Below, piece after piece: positions 7,798-18,931 of a DNA stretch of 64,000 nt. The stretch is from the NCBI GenBank assembly GCA_977020255.1, contig CDROCS010002432.1:1-64000 (forward strand), written 5' to 3'. The translations under genes and the position numbers were made by a program. The notes beneath the pieces are model-generated. The model was not told the DNA's origin, made no database searches, and saw only the letters and a program-made list of their open reading frames with translations. The DNA comes from Obrimoposthia wandeli (taxonomy: Eukaryota). Each line of letters starts with the position of its first letter. The stretch's first letter is position 1.

Positions 7798-9828
7798 TTA
7801 TAAATCCAAAATAATCGCGCTAGTGCCTTTTGCCGGGACTGCACAGCAGATAAGCACTTCGTTTTCTGCGATTTCTACGCTTGGTTGTGTTCTATAAGTA
7901 ACCTTACCCGCGTGTAGTTTTACGGCACATGATCCACAGTTGCCATTTCTGCAGCTATAGGCTGGCGATAGCCCTTGTTTTTCGGCTACCACTAAGAGTG
8001 TTTCATCACCTTTGTGCCATTGTTGTGTGATTTTTGAGTGGCGAAACTCTAGCGTGGTGCTATCGGCTTCTTTCGTTATGTCATTTTTATGGGTTAAGCG
8101 GCGTAAAGAGGCTGGCCCAAATGTTTCTGCGAAAATTTGTTTATCGGCAACACCGAGTTCAAGCAAAAGGTCATACATTGCTTGCATAAATGCTTTTGGT
8201 CCACATAGAAAGTAATCACTTGTTTGAAGTGCATTAAGGTCTGTGCTGTTTTCTACTAAAACGTGTTTGGATATTCTTTTACCTGCAAGCGGGTAGTAAG
8301 CAATGCTGTTATCAGTGGCTGAGGCTAGTTTTGTAAAGTCATCATAAAAAGCCAGTTGCTCTCTTGTTTGCGCCGAATGAAAAATACTGAGGGGCCTTAT
8401 ATAGCGCATTCTAATGCCTTCAATATACGTTTGTAACGCCATTGATATCATAGGTGTTATACCTACTCCTCCGGCTAATAGTACGGCAGGTCGTTTGGCT
8501 GATGTGTCTAGCCAAAAATTTCCTTGAGGTAGCTTTGCGTCAATCAGTGCACCAATGGTTAGGTTTTGATGTAAATGTGATGACGCCACACCATGTAATT
8601 CACGCTTAACCGAAATGCGATAAAACGCATCATGAGGCGAGCTAGACAAGGTATAGTTGCGAATAATCCACTCTTTTTTCTTCGGCATTGTTAAATCACT
8701 GGCTAAGCCAAGCGCTATGCGAATAGTTAAGTGTTGGCCTGCTTTAAAGGGCACAAGTTCACCCTTATCGTGTTTTTCTAGATAAAAAGATCGTATGTCA
8801 GCCGTTTCATCAACGATCTTAACAACCTTAAATGAATGCCACTTATTTGATTGCTGCTGAGCCATTTCAAGTTGCTTAGCTTGTGCCCAACTACCGGTTA
8901 ACAGTGAATTAGGAGAATACTCAACAAGGCTAGCTCTAAAAGGTAAGGCATTTTTTATACTCAGGCCTTGCTCGACAATAAATTGCCAACCGCGCTGTGC
9001 ACCTTTGAATGAATTAAGTCGAGGATCATGCTCTGGCAGTATTTCCACTCGTCCGGAAAGGAATAATAAGTCACCTGTTTCAAAGTTAGGAAAGAGCAAA
9101 CCCGCTTTCGGATTCAGTAAGAAGTTGCCCATGGTATTAAAGAAGTTGTTGCCTGCGTAATCAGGAATGGTCAGGGTATTGCCATCTACGGCTACAAAAC
9201 CTGATTTTCCGCCACGATGCGATACGTCAATGCTTTCGACGTTTTGCGTATTTTTGACGTTAACTGCGCTAGCGACAAAAAAAGTATCGGCCTGAGAAAT
9301 TACACTTTTAGCGTCACTGTCTAATTCATCAAAATAGGTTTTTATTGCCGCCACGTTGTCAACTTGGCGAAAATCACGGGTTTGAATGTACTGTGGACAA
9401 TTGCCAAATGATTGATCAACTTTAACGCTAAAATTATTCTCTGTGACAGAGGTTATGTGTGCATTTAAACGGTTTCGTCTGCGTGTTGGTATTTCAATGC
9501 CCAAAAAACCTAATGGCCGACCCAGTTTTAGTGAGCTTGATAAAGGATCGCCTGTAATAGGCGTTGCTTGAATATCCACATTGGTAGGTGTTGTTGAATT
9601 CATAAAACCAGGCGAGCCCGGTAAAATAGAGGCCCAAGGTCTGCCTGCTTCGTCGACGCTACCAACAACAACAAAAGGCAGTTTGGCAAAAAAGTCACGG
9701 TGCTGCTCGGGCAGGTAAGAACGAATAACTTTGCGGCCAATAGTCGCCATTGCATCGGCTTTGCCCACTCGCTGTTGCATGGCTTTTTCGCCGGCATGAA
9801 AAGGTGATGTTTCTGATGCGTTAGACAT
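7798..9828 (-). CDS. Fusion of PNPOx-like FMN-binding domains, an FNR-type FAD/NAD reductase and a 2Fe-2S ferredoxin
   Basis: NCPQYI, SHRGG, PDYAGNNFFNTMGN; RNYTLS; AGGVGITP; YFLCGP; CRNGNCGSC...LICC. Confidence 0.85.
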   Translation of the reverse strand: MSNASETSPFHAGEKAMQQRVGKADAMATIGRKVIRSYLPEQHRDFFAKLPFVVVGSVDEAGRPWASILPGSPGFMNSTTPTNVDIQATPITGDPLSSSLKLGRPLGFLGIEIPTRRRNRLNAHITSVTENNFSVKVDQSFGNCPQYIQTRDFRQVDNVAAIKTYFDELDSDAKSVISQADTFFVASAVNVKNTQNVESIDVSHRGGKSGFVAVDGNTLTIPDYAGNNFFNTMGNFLLNPKAGLLFPNFETGDLLFLSGRVEILPEHDPRLNSFKGAQRGWQFIVEQGLSIKNALPFRASLVEYSPNSLLTGSWAQAKQLEMAQQQSNKWHSFKVVKIVDETADIRSFYLEKHDKGELVPFKAGQHLTIRIALGLASDLTMPKKKEWIIRNYTLSSSPHDAFYRISVKRELHGVASSHLHQNLTIGALIDAKLPQGNFWLDTSAKRPAVLLAGGVGITPMISMALQTYIEGIRMRYIRPLSIFHSAQTREQLAFYDDFTKLASATDNSIAYYPLAGKRISKHVLVENSTDLNALQTSDYFLCGPKAFMQAMYDLLLELGVADKQIFAETFGPASLRRLTHKNDITKEADSTTLEFRHSKITQQWHKGDETLLVVAEKQGLSPAYSCRNGNCGSCAVKLHAGKVTYRTQPSVEIAENEVLICCAVPAKGTSAIILDL

Positions 9829-11796: not shown

Positions 11797-11834
11797 AAAA
11801 AAACTAGCTATGCATTAAGCAAAGCTAGTTTTTT
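11797..11834. terminator. Bidirectional terminator
   Basis: AAAAAAACTAGCT...AGCTAGTTTTTT between convergent genes. Confidence 0.7.
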
Positions 11835-11919
11835 ATCAGTATTATCAAAGGCAATATTATAACGAGTTGATTAATTTCTATTTATTTTTTCTCATAAAAA
11901 AGTAGAAAAGAGAATCAAT

Positions 11920-14646
11920 TTAATGCGTTTTATTTATATCCTCTGGTGTTATTTCAGCATCAGGCTTAGTACGTTGAATATTTTCATATTTAGTCGCTTT
12001 AACCTGAGCGGGATCAGCCATTTGGTCAATGTATTTTTGGGCAACGCTAGCATCAATAACTTTTTTACCTTGATGCTGCACGTTATAGCGAGATAAATAA
12101 AACCAAATATCTTTTGCTTGAAAGTCTTTAATGACTTCGCCTTTTTGTGATTTGGCGTAGTTATCTTTAAAGCCATCGCTTTGCACATAACTGACTAAAC
12201 GCTTGATTTCGTCTTTGGTCAATGTACCGCCAACTTTATCACCGTTACCTATGCCAAAGGCTGGCATAGAGGCAGTAGGGTTGCCTGAATAAACGAAACC
12301 TTCCATCGCTGCTGCAGGGTATGTCATGAAGTTCTTCAAAGGCTTACCGTCAATACCTTCGCCATTTTGACCATGGCAAAGCATACAGTTTGCTTCAAAA
12401 ATCTGCTTACCAGACAAATTATGTTGTGTACCTTTACCTATAAGTATTGGTTTTGAAGGCTGTAAAGGAATACTAGAGCCATCAGTACGTATTAAGTCAT
12501 CTCGTTTTACTAAACCGGCAGCATTTGGATTAAACAGCGCCAATTGTGGTGCCTGTTTAAGTGCAGGGTGATGTGCTATCGAAAAGTTCATCGCAACGTT
12601 TTTAACATTTTCACCTTGGTGAATATCACCTTCAATTGCATCGAATACTGCGTTTGAACTTGCGCCTAGGTTTATTTTTACTTCACCAGACATTACTGGA
12701 GCTGCACCATACTCACCATGAGCAGCACTTACATAAGGAATGCCATCAGCATCGTCATCACCGTTACCATAGCCAGTAAATATTTCACCCGTTGATTGAT
12801 GCTCAGATAATAATAATCCACTTTGATTAACGGTTTGAACCCACCAACGAGTCATGTGCTCTACTTGGTCTTCTAATAAGTAGCTCGGTGTTGTGAACAT
12901 TATTTCGCGTAAAGCCGCCATAGTAATACCAACAGAATAAGGCGTAATGGTGGCAATATCGTTATTTAGCTCACTACGATAAACCCCATCTCTTACTTGC
13001 CAGTAGTTTTTGTTGACATGGTTATATGCTTTTCGAGCTGCGACTAAGTATTTATCGTCACGGCTCGAGTAATACGCGGCAATTAGTGCGCGAATAGCTT
13101 CAAACTGTGACGTGCCGATATCGCGTTGACCATTAGCTTGTCCTGAAGTGCTATAACTGCTGTTAAAACTACCGTTAGTATTTTGCACTTTCACTAAAAA
13201 GTTAGCGTTATTAACTAATAATACTTTTGCTTGCTCAACAAGTTCAGGCTTGCGCCCCATGCTCTGCCAAGATTGCGCCATATCATTAACTGCCACCATT
13301 GCCATGGCCATATCTTTTAAGGTAATGCTTGAGCCTTTACCTTCTTCAGGATGCCATTGAGAAACAAGAATGTTGTTATCAGTATGCATGGCTTGAATAT
13401 TTTTAAACACGGCATTGCCAATTGACTCAGCAAGTAAACCGGTACGCTTTTCAACTAAACCACCATCTACCGGTGGATTATCAGTAAAAAAGTCACCACG
13501 ACGGTCTGCTGCTACAGCATAAGCAGAAGTTGCCCATACCCATGATGCTTGATCCCATAACTGACTGCTGGCGTCTTGCATGTCCATTGCCCAAACACGT
13601 TCAGGAATGTCACCAACCCATAATAAGTTTGGCTTTATTTCATGCGGTAAGTACTTAAAGCCATCTTTAGGATCATAAGTTTCGGTGTTAAGGCCTATAA
13701 GTTTTTCACCATCAGTAAACATTGATGACTTCACTTGTAACATGGCATTTAACGCACTCATGGTTAAGCCCCAGCCGCGCATGCCTTCTTCAGCGTCATT
13801 ACCGAGTAATGATACTTCTTTATGCTTCGATATATGCGTGGTACCGGTATGATTTGCTTGAAAGAATCGGTCTAACCATTGTGAACGGCGTTTAACAAAT
13901 TGGCCGATAGCACCTAAGTTAAATGTGGTGTCCATATCTCCATGATCAAAGCGCTGCGGTAAGTCGTTAAAGTAGGTGTTAGGTACTCCCCAACCTCCTT
14001 TTTTACCACTAATAGGATCATCAAAGCTATCGGTGTTATCTAATTTACCAGTAAAAAAGGGTTGTACTGATTTATATTGTAAGTAGGTTGGTTGAATATC
14101 ATCAAAAACGCGAGGAAACCCCGTTCGCTGATAAACCAAAGGTAATTCCATACCTAATAAAATGTCTTTATTTGAGAAGTTTCGTTCACCTCGGTCACGT
14201 AATAACTTATTGAACTGACTTTGTTTTTCAGCTTTTATGCTAAAATAAGGGCCATGCACCATATGGACACCCGAATGACTACGTCCACCAATATAATCAA
14301 GTAAGTAACGGGCATAAAAGTACATTTCACGGGCAGTCACCCACTGAAAGGCTCTTTTATAAGCGACAGGAAAGCTTGCTTTAACCATGTCGTTATAGCC
14401 TTCCATGCCTGTTTTATAACCTTCATTTGCCATGAAAGTCGCTTCGTTAGTATAAAAAGTACGATCAATGATCTTACTGTTAATCTTCGAACGGTACTGC
14501 GATAAGTCAGGTTGTGAGAAGCCCCCTTTAATGGCTACGGTACGCTGGTCTGAGGTTAATATATAATTTTTCGCAATCGCCTGAGTGATGAATGCACAGG
14601 TAATTGAGATACAAAGTGTTTTGACGATAAATTTTTTATTTTTCAT
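11920..14646 (-). CDS. Exported 908-aa protein: unknown N-domain, (alpha/alpha)-toroid-like region and C-terminal monoheme cytochrome c
   Basis: Sec signal ending AIA; AIRALIAAYYSSRDDKYLVAARKAYNHVNKNYW helix pair; DDDADGIP acidic loop; CMLCH (coded at 12373-12387) with SMPAFG as candidate distal Met. Confidence 0.7.
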   Translation of the reverse strand: MKNKKFIVKTLCISITCAFITQAIAKNYILTSDQRTVAIKGGFSQPDLSQYRSKINSKIIDRTFYTNEATFMANEGYKTGMEGYNDMVKASFPVAYKRAFQWVTAREMYFYARYLLDYIGGRSHSGVHMVHGPYFSIKAEKQSQFNKLLRDRGERNFSNKDILLGMELPLVYQRTGFPRVFDDIQPTYLQYKSVQPFFTGKLDNTDSFDDPISGKKGGWGVPNTYFNDLPQRFDHGDMDTTFNLGAIGQFVKRRSQWLDRFFQANHTGTTHISKHKEVSLLGNDAEEGMRGWGLTMSALNAMLQVKSSMFTDGEKLIGLNTETYDPKDGFKYLPHEIKPNLLWVGDIPERVWAMDMQDASSQLWDQASWVWATSAYAVAADRRGDFFTDNPPVDGGLVEKRTGLLAESIGNAVFKNIQAMHTDNNILVSQWHPEEGKGSSITLKDMAMAMVAVNDMAQSWQSMGRKPELVEQAKVLLVNNANFLVKVQNTNGSFNSSYSTSGQANGQRDIGTSQFEAIRALIAAYYSSRDDKYLVAARKAYNHVNKNYWQVRDGVYRSELNNDIATITPYSVGITMAALREIMFTTPSYLLEDQVEHMTRWWVQTVNQSGLLLSEHQSTGEIFTGYGNGDDDADGIPYVSAAHGEYGAAPVMSGEVKINLGASSNAVFDAIEGDIHQGENVKNVAMNFSIAHHPALKQAPQLALFNPNAAGLVKRDDLIRTDGSSIPLQPSKPILIGKGTQHNLSGKQIFEANCMLCHGQNGEGIDGKPLKNFMTYPAAAMEGFVYSGNPTASMPAFGIGNGDKVGGTLTKDEIKRLVSYVQSDGFKDNYAKSQKGEVIKDFQAKDIWFYLSRYNVQHQGKKVIDASVAQKYIDQMADPAQVKATKYENIQRTKPDAEITPEDINKTH

Positions 14647-14665
14647 TATTATGCTCTTTCCTAGC

Positions 14666-16159
14666 TTAAAGAATCGTACTGATAGAAAAACGGAAAATTG
14701 ATTCAGGTGCAGGACCTAAATCAGGTTCAATAACACGAAAGAGTGTTGATAACGTAAAGCGAAGTTGAGGATTTGGACTGAAAATTATAGAAGGAGCAAT
14801 AAAGCCTGTTAAACCTCCAGAAAATCCAGGTCGATGCCCAACATCAAAAACAAAGGCTTCTTCGCCAACACTGCCACAATTACTCACTACACCAATATCG
14901 GCGGCAATACAGGTATGAATTTCTGGCTCAGGAATGTTGCCTGAATACGTATCTTCTTCACGATCGAAAGCAATTAAACTTAAATCAAGAGAGAGGTAAT
15001 CTTTATAGATAGGCTTCACGAAAGAAGTGAAATAGGTAGTAATGTCACCGGGATCAATGCCATCACTTTCTGAGACGAACTTATGGCTAAAGCCACCATG
15101 TAGTGCGGAACGTCCTAGGAAACTATTAGCAGAAAATTGCTTGGTCAAAAATGCACCAACTAAGAAGCTGGTTGATCCGGTACCTGACTGTAAAATAGCA
15201 GGTAAACGACCATCGGCAGAAAAACGACCAAAAACACCATTGTTAAACGGGAAATCGCCAACAAATGAATTATCGAAATTTTGACCGCCAGGAGAAAAGC
15301 TTTGTACGCCTAATGAAGGAGCACTAAAGGCCGGATTGTTATTACACAATTCCCTATTATCAATATTAAAATTCCTGAAGAAACAACGACCATCGCCCCA
15401 AGTGCCATTTTCTACATTGGCTCTTTGTACGGCATCAAAACCTTGCGCAGCTACGGTATTTGGTGGCTGAGGACGACGAGCACTGATTCTACCATTGCTA
15501 CCAAAAGTCGCTTCATTACTGCCTGTTGGTAAAAATACCGCACCCACTACAGCTAAACCAAAACCGCTATTAGCTTGATCCAGAACCTTTTTCTTTAAAA
15601 ATATACCTACATCACCAATGTGAGAAGAACTACCTGCATTTTCTAAACTGATAAACGATTGGCCGTTAGGGTTAATGGAACCATTTGTTTCTACATTGCG
15701 ATAAGGTAAATTAACTCGTAATGTGAAACTGTGTAAGTATTTTCTATTTAAATCAAAACCGTAAAATAAATCTAGATCTGATAATTGTCTGTTAACTTTA
15801 AAATTACTAAAAATATCAGTGTTGGGATCGCCATCTTTAAAAAAGTCATTTCCATCAAGTGATAGATGACGCTGAGAGAAATCTAACCTGAAGGAACCTG
15901 GTGGTAAAACATAGGCATGTTGAGTAACAGCAGGTGTTAACAACGGAGGAATAAAGGTTTTTATTTGATGACCAATTTGCTTTCTGTCATGTACGTAAAA
16001 GTCATCACTGCCATAGATACTGTCTGCTGTACCAAGCGTGAGATAATCGTCAATGCTACTCTTTTTTACTTCTTCAGCAAACGTTGCTATCGGCGCATTT
16101 AATAGTAGGGCCAATAGCAGCTTTTGCCTGAGTTTTAATTTTTTATGGTGCATTTTCAT
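14666..16159 (-). CDS. Outer-membrane beta-barrel, probably Phenol_MetA_deg/COG4313-like channel
   Basis: Signal peptide; IGDVGIFLK, FLPTG and LQSGTGS family-like motifs; alternating amphipathic strands; two Cys pairs. Confidence 0.65.
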   Translation of the reverse strand: MKMHHKKLKLRQKLLLALLLNAPIATFAEEVKKSSIDDYLTLGTADSIYGSDDFYVHDRKQIGHQIKTFIPPLLTPAVTQHAYVLPPGSFRLDFSQRHLSLDGNDFFKDGDPNTDIFSNFKVNRQLSDLDLFYGFDLNRKYLHSFTLRVNLPYRNVETNGSINPNGQSFISLENAGSSSHIGDVGIFLKKKVLDQANSGFGLAVVGAVFLPTGSNEATFGSNGRISARRPQPPNTVAAQGFDAVQRANVENGTWGDGRCFFRNFNIDNRELCNNNPAFSAPSLGVQSFSPGGQNFDNSFVGDFPFNNGVFGRFSADGRLPAILQSGTGSTSFLVGAFLTKQFSANSFLGRSALHGGFSHKFVSESDGIDPGDITTYFTSFVKPIYKDYLSLDLSLIAFDREEDTYSGNIPEPEIHTCIAADIGVVSNCGSVGEEAFVFDVGHRPGFSGGLTGFIAPSIIFSPNPQLRFTLSTLFRVIEPDLGPAPESIFRFSISTIL

Positions 16160-16567
16160 ATCCTAAATAATTTCTTACTACTGATAGTGAAAAATTATTC
16201 TACGGATACTAAAAGTTATTTCTTAACAGAAATAGACGCATTCTATAAAGAAATCATCACGAAGGTATCACGTAAAAATGATAACTTTTTATGAAAGAAA
16301 ATATGAAATGTACGGTCACGAGTGTTTTATTTTTTGAGGGAATATAGCTAACGTTAAAAAGGTTGGTTTATATGACTTTCATTTCTCACTTTAGCGAACG
16401 TAGCTTTTTTGTGTTGCATGGCGTTTAGTTAATGTGTCGTTTCAGTTTTTAAACAGTGTTTAGATCAGCGCTTATATCGAAACTTACACTGGCATTTATA
16501 TTTGTATCAATATGATCCGTAATATAAATGCCAGTCGCTATTTTAAGCGTTAAGCACCCATGCCTAT

Positions 16568-18931
16568 TTATCTATTTTGTAGGCGATTATAATCAAACAG
16601 TCCGGCTTTGAAAGGATGCTGTTTTTTATTGTCAGCATGCACGGTGTCGCTGTGTTGCCAAAAGTTTGGATTGGTTCGGCGAATTGCGTATTGGTCCATT
16701 AACTTTTCATAATCTGCTTGCGTACTCAATGCTGACACCAACTCAACATAACTCGACACTTGCGACTCGTTAATATTGATAAATACATCAGGATAAGCGC
16801 CCACTAAACCATGTGTCACGGTTAGGGTATCTAGCTCAGGTAAGCGGTTATCGTCTTCACTGAGTAAGCTGGTGATGTTGCTATGGCTATTGTTTCTTAG
16901 CAGGGTGTAATAGTGTGTTTTGTCAGACCCTTGTATCGATAAGAAGGTGATCGGTGGCAATAATGTTACTGGCCCGCCGACTAGGTTTTGTAACTTGTCT
17001 AACGCTTGGTGATGGCTGCTAGGCGTTTTTTCATTTGATAGATTATTTTCCGTCGCAAGTACTGGCTCAAGTTTTTGCTGTAATAACTGATACAACTCTT
17101 GTTTGTATTGCGTGGTTTTATAATCAATACCAGAAGGCTGAGAGAATAACTTATGTGGGGCAAGTAAGTACTCTTTTTGACTGTCAGATACACCTTGGTA
17201 CCATTTACTGAGTTCAGTTTTTCTTGTTTCTGGTGGTAGCAGTGCTAGAAAGTTGAATTCGCCTTCTATACGTAAAAAATCCATATATAAACGAGTATTT
17301 AATTGATGGCCAATATTGCCATAAACATCAAAGCCAGCGGCTAATAAATAATGAATACGCTCTAATAAACCATAGTCAATTACCCACGATGTTTGTGGTG
17401 GACGTCCGACTAAACCTTTTACTACGGTGGCGGAGTCAATATGTCGAAAGATAGTTAAGGCGGCATTAGGGTTTTCATCGTCGCCAGCCCAAATTTGATC
17501 TGTCGTTAAATGTTCGCCACCAGGAAAAACTTTATTCATCGTGGTTGCTTTATCATGCATGAATTTTTGTTGTAGCTTAGAATATTTTAACCAGTTAGCT
17601 AAAATATAGGCGTTACTTTCAGCTGCTGAAGGTAGGGCTAATTGATCTTGTTGTGCGTTATAAAATGCCGAATGTTCCTTAGCATCTTTCTCATTCGGGT
17701 TAACAAAAAACACCCAAAAATGATCATTAATGACATTTAAAGCGACTTGGCCTCGACAGACTGGGCTTTTAATGAAGTTCATGATGGTAAATTCTGCTTC
17801 TTCAAGCAAAAATTTGTAACGTGCGATGGATGGAATTTCTTCAAAAGCTTTGAAAGGATTTGAAGCAACTTCTGGCTTATACGAAGGCAAACGTGTGACT
17901 TGATAGTTATCTTGTAAAAATAGCTGGCTATATTTTTCTAGTCGCTCGTTGTTTAAAGCGTAAGGCATGTGCGTTTTTTCTAAAATGGTGCCACGTTCGC
18001 GCCAAAGACGATAATAAACGCGGTCTACGCCAGGTTCGTCGTAAGGTCGGCGCGTTGCAATCATATCAATGGCTTGTCCTGGTGGTGTTTTTGAGCGCAC
18101 AACTTTAAAGAACTCTCCAGCCGGTAATTCTGAGAAATACAGGTGGGCTATAAACCAATGCTCGTATAGGTAACGACTGACCAGCCTTTCTTTTAAGCTA
18201 TCACCATTTAAAAAGTTTTCCCACAAGGTTACTTGCTCAGTGTAAGTATCATCTAATGGTGCTTTAGGGGCCATTTTTGCGCCGCTGCGTAGCCAATCTT
18301 GTAAAATTTTATCTTCTGGTGCTGAAAGGGCTGGTAAGCCAAACGGCATGCCCCAATCAGGATTGTTCGCTACGTAGCTGTCCATTTCAACATCGGTCGG
18401 GCATTGTTGATCTCGGTCTAACGCGAAATTAAATTGCTTAGGTAACAATTTACCTTCTGGCAATGGATGTCGCTGCTTAAGGGCGAGCAATCTCGACATT
18501 ACCCCTGTTGTTTGGTTCAGGGCTGGGCTTTGCTGGCGCTCGTTAATCACCGGATAAAAGCCATTGTTGCGCCAAGCCGTTGTACTGTCTTCATCAATAA
18601 ACAATCGTTGTGGCGTTTCTGCAATTAAGCGCGTGCCGTCATAGACCCGTGTTTTACTTGCGCCACGGTCGATACCTTCTGGCGACGATAGTTTTAATTG
18701 GCAAGGAGCATCGTAACAACCATGGCAAACCACACATCGATTTTCAATGATTGGTTGTACTTGTTCATGATAAAAGTCAGCTGGGCTTGAATTGTCGACC
18801 ACCATACGCTGTTGAGGCTCAGCTATACCAAATAGGTTGTCAAAGTGATTGTTGGCAATAACGGCACAACCGCCAAGAATGGCAACGATGATGATAAGTA
18901 CAAAAGGTTTTGTCTTAAGAAAAGCTAACAT
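16568..18931 (-). CDS. cti: Fatty acid cis/trans isomerase
   Basis: Lipobox LGGC, CVVCHGCYDAPCQLKL heme motif, FIKSPVCRGQVALNVI. Confidence 0.93.
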   Translation of the reverse strand: MLAFLKTKPFVLIIIVAILGGCAVIANNHFDNLFGIAEPQQRMVVDNSSPADFYHEQVQPIIENRCVVCHGCYDAPCQLKLSSPEGIDRGASKTRVYDGTRLIAETPQRLFIDEDSTTAWRNNGFYPVINERQQSPALNQTTGVMSRLLALKQRHPLPEGKLLPKQFNFALDRDQQCPTDVEMDSYVANNPDWGMPFGLPALSAPEDKILQDWLRSGAKMAPKAPLDDTYTEQVTLWENFLNGDSLKERLVSRYLYEHWFIAHLYFSELPAGEFFKVVRSKTPPGQAIDMIATRRPYDEPGVDRVYYRLWRERGTILEKTHMPYALNNERLEKYSQLFLQDNYQVTRLPSYKPEVASNPFKAFEEIPSIARYKFLLEEAEFTIMNFIKSPVCRGQVALNVINDHFWVFFVNPNEKDAKEHSAFYNAQQDQLALPSAAESNAYILANWLKYSKLQQKFMHDKATTMNKVFPGGEHLTTDQIWAGDDENPNAALTIFRHIDSATVVKGLVGRPPQTSWVIDYGLLERIHYLLAAGFDVYGNIGHQLNTRLYMDFLRIEGEFNFLALLPPETRKTELSKWYQGVSDSQKEYLLAPHKLFSQPSGIDYKTTQYKQELYQLLQQKLEPVLATENNLSNEKTPSSHHQALDKLQNLVGGPVTLLPPITFLSIQGSDKTHYYTLLRNNSHSNITSLLSEDDNRLPELDTLTVTHGLVGAYPDVFININESQVSSYVELVSALSTQADYEKLMDQYAIRRTNPNFWQHSDTVHADNKKQHPFKAGLFDYNRLQNR

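Follow-up and report, generated by a model that had tools for sequence, protein, structure and literature searches.

A toroid-cytochrome c protein and its partner outer-membrane channel as a candidate envelope redox module

The two-gene locus

Within 64,000 nucleotides (nt) of DNA from Obrimoposthia wandeli (contig CDROCS010002432.1 of assembly GCA_977020255.1, positions 1 to 64,000; hereafter the window), we analysed a minus-strand gene at 11920..14646 that encodes a protein of 908 amino acids, in which a predicted (alpha/alpha)6-type toroid precedes a class I cytochrome c domain, together with the gene directly upstream, which encodes a putative outer-membrane beta-barrel channel. Together, the two genes have the appearance of a module for electron transfer in the cell envelope that has not been described before. 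The toroid-cytochrome c gene has an ATG start and a stop codon at 11920-11922, and was delimited with the list of open reading frames (ORFs), the homologues and an AlphaFold2 model; its coordinates are exactly those of the initial annotation, which had been made from the letters alone and had given no strand. Because a word search returned 104 homologues at 36-99% identity and the Pfam model Cytochrom_C (PF00034) matches residues 745-823 with 35.5 bits against a cut-off of 21.3 (E 2.6e-8), the frame is not a chance ORF. The fullest name given to any of these homologues is 'c-type cytochrome', and the GC content of the ORF (0.40) is close to that of the window (0.39).

The first 25 residues (14572..14646, minus strand) read in translation as a signal peptide with a basic N-terminus, a hydrophobic core and an AIA cleavage motif; cleavage likely follows the AIA at residue 25 and would leave a mature chain of ~99 kDa with an isoelectric point of 6.4. 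Cytochrome c maturation requires periplasmic export of a haem c domain. This domain occupies residues ~741-835 (12142..12426, minus strand), as delimited by Pfam and by PDB sequence matches to QcrC, CcoP and c6, and is also recognised by PF13442 (32.3 bits versus 27, E 1.3e-7). It has the class I layout, with one CxxCH on its N-terminal side, the attachment motif CMLCH (residues 754-758; 12373..12387, minus strand), and a distal Met ~40 residues downstream. The likely distal ligand, judged from the sequence, is Met794 (codon 12265..12267, minus strand), which lies in SMPAFG (residues 793-798), a variant of M-P-x-W/F-G, at the position expected from the class I profile. In an alignment of 41 sequences (alignment A1), two Gemmatimonadota proteins are devoid of the entire haem domain, and C754, C757, H758, M794 and P795 are kept in all 39 relatives that have it. 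Both the Pfam score and this conservation thus agree with the single class I haem c, with CxxCH and distal Met, that had been proposed at the outset. The mature chain contains no Cys outside CMLCH, again as proposed: the protein has Cys only at 12, 17, 754 and 757, and the first two fall within the signal peptide. A haem with His/Met ligation is an electron carrier only and cannot itself bind substrate.

The partner gene (14666..16159, minus strand; 497 amino acids), which the initial annotation had missed, lies 19 nt upstream of the toroid gene. The predicted structure of its product superposes best on 12-strand barrels and is of the COG4313/FapF type, and the C-terminal residue of its relatives is mostly aromatic. 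Between the barrel strands lies a conserved insertion of 120 residues (residues ~211-330; 15170..15529, minus strand), visible in the secondary structure of the model and as motifs in alignment A2. PF13557 gave no match at E up to 10 on four partner orthologues including the window protein, and reached 19.3 bits versus 22 on a channel copy from the sister clade described below. We looked for the partner by clustering the neighbouring ORFs in the 42 loci with enough upstream sequence, and 39 of them have it directly upstream in the same orientation, with gaps mostly between -53 and +80 nt. Since the Shewanella hanedai locus matches the window in these two genes only and has different flanks, the pair moves as a unit.

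Two hairpins frame the pair. The first, followed by a U-run (11797..11835, minus strand; -20.6 kcal/mol, z -6.3, none of 200 shuffles as stable), is the likely intrinsic terminator of the two-gene unit, as far as sequence and folding can tell; this AT-rich element was missed by a consensus terminator scan, found by eye and confirmed by RNA folding. The second (16490..16538, minus strand; -21.5 kcal/mol, z -5.7) is a strong hairpin between the pair and a full-length fatty acid cis/trans isomerase (CTI) gene (16568-18931, minus strand; PF06934, E 5e-269), just 3' of the latter and in front of the pair, from which CTI is separated by a 408-bp spacer. As hairpins bracket both sides, we regard the pair as a unit of its own. 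A functional link between CTI and the pair was rejected, as CTI occurs at no other locus, the closest species shares the pair only, and the strong hairpin stands between them.

Two further observations concern the channel gene at other loci. In two of the three channel-less loci (L035, 4484-5920, and L042, both cluster 18), a protein of 478 amino acids without a Pfam match is encoded upstream on the opposite strand and may be a substitute outer-membrane partner. In a metagenome-assembled genome (MAG) of Methylococcales (L003, 4314-7974, on the same contig as L024), the channel gene is split by an opposite-strand transposase of the IS66 family and the toroid gene is intact.

The toroid and its conserved residues

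The toroid was delimited by structural comparison to residues ~57-660 (12667..14478, minus strand) and carries long conserved loop insertions. A beta-rich linker connects it to the haem domain (residues 661-740; 12427..12666, minus strand) in the secondary structure of the model, at a predicted local distance difference test score (pLDDT) of 84-93. Behind the haem domain follows a helical tail with a FYLSR motif (residues 836-908; 11923..12141, minus strand; model helices 847-857, 866-875 and 901-907), which is a gap in 10 of the 41 aligned sequences and missing from shorter relatives. The AlphaFold2 model of the whole protein, built from 41 relatives, reached a pLDDT of 84.8 and a predicted template modelling score of 0.89, with low confidence for the loops 120-128 and 180-235. 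Foldseek matched it to AGE-type epimerases (E ~1e-5), and in an exhaustive structural comparison residues ~57-660 superposed on (alpha/alpha)6 enzymes, with no single family prominent. The model and both comparisons therefore support the six-hairpin scaffold which had been guessed from a helix-hairpin stretch (residues 514-549). The "unknown N-domain" postulated in front of it did not hold up: since the matches to toroid enzymes start at residue 57-60, this region is the first part of the toroid, and a separate N-terminal domain of unknown fold is ruled out.

In contrast to the fold, the sequence of the non-haem part belongs to no described family, as had been suspected, according to Pfam, NCBIfam, PDB sequence searches and a toroid profile search. 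No Pfam or NCBIfam family scored above threshold on this part; what we found below threshold were echoes of C5-epim_C and GlcNAc_2-epim, confined to one helix hairpin, the latter (PF07221) with 15.4 bits versus a cut-off of 23.4. PDB searches with the single sequence and with a profile returned cytochromes only, plus a 35-residue match to cellobiose 2-epimerase, and hhalign against Escherichia coli YihS gave a probability of 1.4%. We therefore take the AGE resemblance as one of fold and not of family membership, and the sub-threshold single hairpin and the YihS value led us to reject a placement of the protein, by its sequence, among the AGE or C5-epimerases. With the AGE superfamily (cellobiose 2-epimerase, mannose isomerase, YihS) the protein has the (alpha/alpha)6 barrel in common, to which it adds ~250 residues of conserved loops, the DxDxDG loop, the signal peptide and the fused haem c; its invariant H335 and H421, plus R580 and E615, are candidate counterparts of the catalytic His pair, Arg and Glu. 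The GH105/GH88 unsaturated glycuronyl hydrolases (YteR, 4xuv, 4q88) show no sequence match to the protein, and we know of no redox partner of these enzymes.

In alignment A1, the DxDxDG-P calcium-type loop (residues 630-637, DDDADGIP in the window protein; 12736..12759, minus strand) is invariant, with D630, D632, D634, G635 and P637 in 41 of 41 sequences, which supports the acidic loop picked out in the initial annotation. H335 and H421 are equally present in 41/41. A deep toroid alignment that includes distant relatives has G126, G282, P334, S361, L363, H421, G492, A537, R580 and E615 as invariant residues, and D365 and the three loop Asp are kept in >=90% of it, also in distant relatives without cytochrome. 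The homologue alignment thus delivered invariant residues in H335 and H421, but not in the His cluster HSGVHMVHG (residues 124-132) and the Met-rich stretch DMAMAMVAVNDM (residues 445-456), which had been considered as a metal site: H124, H128 and H131 are kept in 34, 20 and 32 of the 41 sequences, and the Met-rich stretch is poorly kept, with M448 (31/41) as its only retained Met. On account of this weak conservation (His 20-34/41, one Met at 31/41), we dropped both as evidence for a copper or other metal site. The aromatic motifs MYFYARY (residues 108-114) and IWFYLSRY (residues 847-854), whose similarity had been pointed out, are each conserved and show no sign of a duplication. All motifs quoted in the initial annotation were located in the translation. 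Its labels "metal-binding" and "oxidoreductase" are properties that we infer for the 908-residue protein.

Relatives, redox neighbours and comparison with known systems

A scan of 185,579 species genomes yielded 49 loci. The closest is that of Shewanella hanedai (88%), next come Alteromonadaceae, Saccharophagus and Pseudocolwellia, and farther loci belong to Alphaproteobacteria, Methylococcales, Ectothiorhodospiraceae, Thiomargarita, Gemmatimonadota, Nitrospinales, Planctomycetota, Lentisphaeria, Acidobacteriota, Methylomirabilis, Opitutales and Woeseiaceae. The gene pair thereby spans about ten phyla, its hosts include chemolithotrophs, methanotrophs and many aerobes, and two of them, Shewanella hanedai and Pseudocolwellia agarivorans, are cultivable. 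Near-identical DNA is present in marine, estuary and algae metagenomes (11 studies). Marine metatranscriptome contigs span 12034-16318 at 95-99% identity, one of them bridging the gene junction, which suggests that the pair is expressed, if these contigs from an RNA library do not stem from contaminating DNA. With the toroid alone, an exhaustive profile search found 468 cluster representatives at E <=1e-3, 62 of them at E <=1e-30; among 147 listed representatives beyond the word-search homologues, only 10 contain CxxCH.

Some of these relatives deserve separate mention. In giant proteins of 1.6-5.7 thousand amino acids (P0112, P0113, P0118, P0133 and others), the toroid stands beside DUF11, SdrD_B, GEVED and CarboxypepD_reg repeats. 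Two modules can be present in a single MAG, both from the core family or one of them from the sister clade (L022 and L029; L013 and L043; L015 and L050), which suggests functionally distinct paralogues. In a Lacipirellulaceae MAG (L053, 9755-12475), the toroid gene consists of three overlapping ORFs and is either a pseudogene or affected by frameshift errors of the assembly.

The toroid is connected to cytochrome c in several ways. i) In the core family, the cytochrome is fused to the C-terminus of the toroid; ii) in the sister clade, the toroid protein (~750 amino acids, 31-36% identity) keeps the C-terminal haem and the channel has an extra N-terminal monohaem cytochrome c, with CxxCH in eight partners; iii) in P0109 and P0138, the cytochrome c is N-terminal to the toroid; iv) unfused toroids are accompanied by separate genes, as P0114 by a cytochrome c gene of 124 codons 22 nt downstream and P0116 by a cupredoxin-like CarboxypepD_reg protein and then a 333-residue cytochrome c; and v) the toroid copy in L042, which has no haem domain, is followed by a separate dihaem cytochrome. 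Since fusion or adjacency recurs in different arrangements, a redox role of this branch is supported. Besides, 27 of the 49 loci have another redox-carrier gene <=4 kb from the pair. Such genes make up 21% of the ORFs within this distance and 6.9% farther away (odds ratio 3.6, Fisher p 7e-7), a comparison that overstates independence as the loci are related. Genes that recur near the pair encode dihaem cytochromes c, a CydA-like bd-like oxidase, a multi-cupredoxin protein, CCP/MauG homologues and a cupredoxin-CarboxypepD_reg protein with a conserved H...C-x2-H-x2-M. Clusters with bd-like oxidases of this sort have been discussed as terminal oxidases in Nitrospirota (PMC9040806).

These surroundings also bear on other explanations of the pair. 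The protein may be an ordinary glycan-active enzyme with a six-hairpin scaffold that acts as a hydrolase, lyase or epimerase, and its haem an accessory that, for instance, senses the redox state or provides electrons for a second enzyme, e.g. a lytic polysaccharide monooxygenase. We consider this unlikely, because no glycosidase or epimerase Pfam model reaches threshold and the hhalign result for YihS is equally negative, almost all core members retain the haem domain, the coupling to cytochromes recurs in independent arrangements, and the pair is found in respiratory clusters and not in polysaccharide-utilisation loci, also in chemolithotrophs and methanotrophs. Less plausible still is a secretion or assembly pair, in which the FapF-like barrel would export a polymer and the toroid would process or clear it in the periplasm, comparable to AlgL-AlgE or BcsZ-BcsC: genes for a synthase, an amyloid subunit or a polymerase are beside the pair in none of the 49 loci, and this reading would account neither for the conservation of the haem domain nor for the redox neighbours. 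Finally, electrons could flow in reverse, from the respiratory chain via haem c to an acceptor in the toroid. Facultative anaerobes could well use such a periplasmic reductase, and the nearest cultivated host, Shewanella hanedai, comes from a genus of this kind that is noted for the electron acceptors it uses in the periplasm and outside the cell; moreover, the direction is not fixed by the domain architecture and no oxidase gene adjoins the pair in the window. Nevertheless, those neighbours that are informative point to flow towards oxygen, since they comprise high-potential carriers and a CydA homologue resembling an oxidase, and many hosts are aerobic, so that we rate a reductase as improbable.

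Among characterised envelope systems, Cyc2 likewise combines an outer-membrane barrel with a monohaem cytochrome c and is modelled with a 16-strand barrel (PMC13741234). Channels of the sister clade (L045-L052 and L043) carry the N-terminal monohaem cytochrome c as in Cyc2, on a barrel of the 12-strand COG4313 type that sets them apart from 16-strand Cyc2. The window channel is predicted to be of the same 12-strand type, has no CxxCH, and its haem resides on a separate periplasmic toroid protein; strand number and missing CxxCH rule out membership in Cyc2. MtrAB, PioAB and MtoAB hold a multihaem (e.g. deca-haem) periplasmic cytochrome inside a 26-strand barrel, and this membership is ruled out by the single CxxCH and the 12-strand-type barrel. 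Compared with the COG4313 proteins (Pput2725, TcpY, SphA) and FapF, the window channel is ~150 residues longer and has the conserved insertion of 120 residues. To our knowledge, none of the known COG4313/FapF channels is paired with a cytochrome. Mature COG4313 proteins have 270-320 residues (PMC4493636), and known members of both groups import hydrophobic molecules or export amyloid (PMC4493636, PMC5557850).

The likeness to Cyc2 leads to a metal-oxidation module as a further alternative. Fe(II) or Mn(II) would enter, or be met at, the outer-membrane channel, be bound by the carboxylate-rich pocket or the DxDxDG loop, and oxidised in an outer-sphere reaction by haem c, from which electrons would pass to carriers and a terminal oxidase. 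In line with this, the sister-clade channel has the Cyc2 layout with an N-terminal monohaem cytochrome c (PMC13741234, 10.1101/228056), the protein offers invariant Asp/Glu residues and a Ca-type loop, and the neighbouring cupredoxins, cytochromes c and bd-like oxidases resemble those discussed for Mn/Fe lithotrophs (PMC9040806). Furthermore, a hexacoordinate haem is enough for outer-sphere metal oxidation, and an extra cofactor would be unneeded. However, the barrel falls with 12-strand COG4313 channels and not with 16-strand Cyc2 (PMC13741234), the window channel is devoid of haem, the need for a toroid of 600 residues to bind a cation is left unexplained, relatives that are secreted by the type IX secretion system (T9SS) or embedded in adhesins suit a polymer or glycan ligand better, and the evidence gathered reveals no known iron or manganese oxidiser among the hosts. 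On balance, metal oxidation appears to be a minor possibility, about on a par with the glycan-active enzyme.

Two other comparisons concern the 908-residue protein itself. In the periplasmic dehydrogenases of the quinohaemoprotein and flavocytochrome c types (type II alcohol dehydrogenase, the cytochrome subunit of fructose dehydrogenase), a class I cytochrome c likewise stands behind the catalytic domain, a putative one in our case, and passes electrons on to the respiratory chain; the haem domain of the 908-residue protein weakly matches 1kv9, 7w2j and 9jqa by sequence. However, those enzymes use a beta-propeller with pyrroloquinoline quinone (PQQ) or flavin adenine dinucleotide (FAD), in contrast to an all-helical toroid without recognised cofactor site. 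In the Thioredox_DsbH-toroid fusions (Brucella Bab1_2064, 7tkv), the redox domain is an N-terminal thioredoxin fold and not a haem c, and the PDB title of 7tkv still reads 'uncharacterised'. A literature search yielded no description of a toroid-cytochrome fusion, of a COG4313-cytochrome pair or of the family.

Two observations on redox genes stand outside this comparison. Redoxin/AhpC-TSA (TlpA-like) genes lie just upstream of distant cytochrome-linked toroid genes on unrelated contigs (L055, 6320-6928; L059, 4498-6058). In the window itself, 7798-9828 on the minus strand encodes a fusion of 676 amino acids that combines a PNPOx-like part, an FNR-type FAD/NAD reductase and a 2Fe-2S ferredoxin, with the reductase part of flavohaemoprotein as its best NCBIfam match.

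Proposed working and significance

Taking these data together, we propose with moderate confidence that the gene pair is a conserved two-gene envelope redox module and that the 908-residue protein is its periplasmic half, an oxidoreductase that feeds the respiratory chain. That this toroid branch works with electron transfer is supported by the architecture, the paired channel and the varied, repeated links to cytochrome c; beyond this, we infer that the toroid is catalytic, which way the electrons flow and to which class the substrate belongs. A small substrate would enter across the outer membrane via the dedicated channel and dock in a polar, acidic pocket of the toroid formed by H335, H421, D365, R580, E615 and the DxDxDG loop. 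There it would be oxidised, and the fused haem c would hand the electrons one by one to soluble carriers of the periplasm, which elsewhere may be the adjacent cupredoxin, dihaem cytochromes c and bd-like oxidase and in the source genome housekeeping cytochromes. Because a haem with His/Met ligation does no more than carry electrons, the reaction itself must take place in the toroid pocket or proceed as outer-sphere transfer from a bound reductant. Substrate oxidation with flow towards oxygen is preferred because the neighbouring genes encode high-potential carriers, and a polar, sugar-like substrate is favoured in view of the enzymes closest in fold, the polar and aromatic character of the invariant residues, and those relatives that are secreted and not linked to redox. 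For the chemistry we prefer a first step in which a base would turn the substrate into an enediolate, as AGE-type epimerases do, and a second in which the haem would oxidise this intermediate by outer-sphere transfer. The substrate might conceivably also be a hydrophobic or phenolic compound, the usual cargo of COG4313 channels (PMC4493636).

Several points weigh against this proposal. We recognised no redox cofactor site in the toroid, the His/Met haem is itself unable to bind substrate, and the sequence of the protein gives no AGE membership. The window and the other Alteromonadales loci contain no additional carrier gene beside the pair, and the sign of expression may be due to DNA in the RNA library. 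Homologues without haem domain do exist, not only the two Gemmatimonadota proteins but also 137 of the 147 distant toroid representatives, which have no CxxCH; some toroid relatives are T9SS cargo or embedded in giant surface proteins, and a cytochrome is absent near the toroid gene in one T9SS context. Since most distant relatives are devoid of CxxCH and occur in such contexts, the toroid domain is not intrinsically redox.

Exported fusions of a catalytic domain with haem c are a common bacterial route for electrons from outside substrates into respiration, and all characterised cases known to us rely on chemistry with PQQ, flavin, molybdenum or multiple haems. In the present protein, a six-hairpin toroid without family assignment stands in the place of the catalytic domain, and a dedicated outer-membrane channel is added. 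In a bolder version of the proposal, which we find possible though doubtful, the toroid would be a dehydrogenase of a new type, cofactor-free or with Ca only, that generates an easily oxidised intermediate, for example a bound metal cation or the enediolate of a sugar, and drains it directly into the fused haem c; with its private channel, it would be an unrecognised entry of electrons into aerobic respiration in ~ten phyla, wired in some of them to cupredoxins and bd-like oxidases. The question is directly testable, since cultivable hosts carry the pair and Shewanella has established genetic tools. Conservation of the pair extends from Gammaproteobacteria as far as Planctomycetota, Gemmatimonadota and Nitrospinota, and clusters of cupredoxin, cytochrome c and bd-like oxidase genes surround it in several phyla. 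Once its substrate is identified, the protein would stand for a new class of enzymes, and the poorly understood bd-like oxidase clusters might gain a function.

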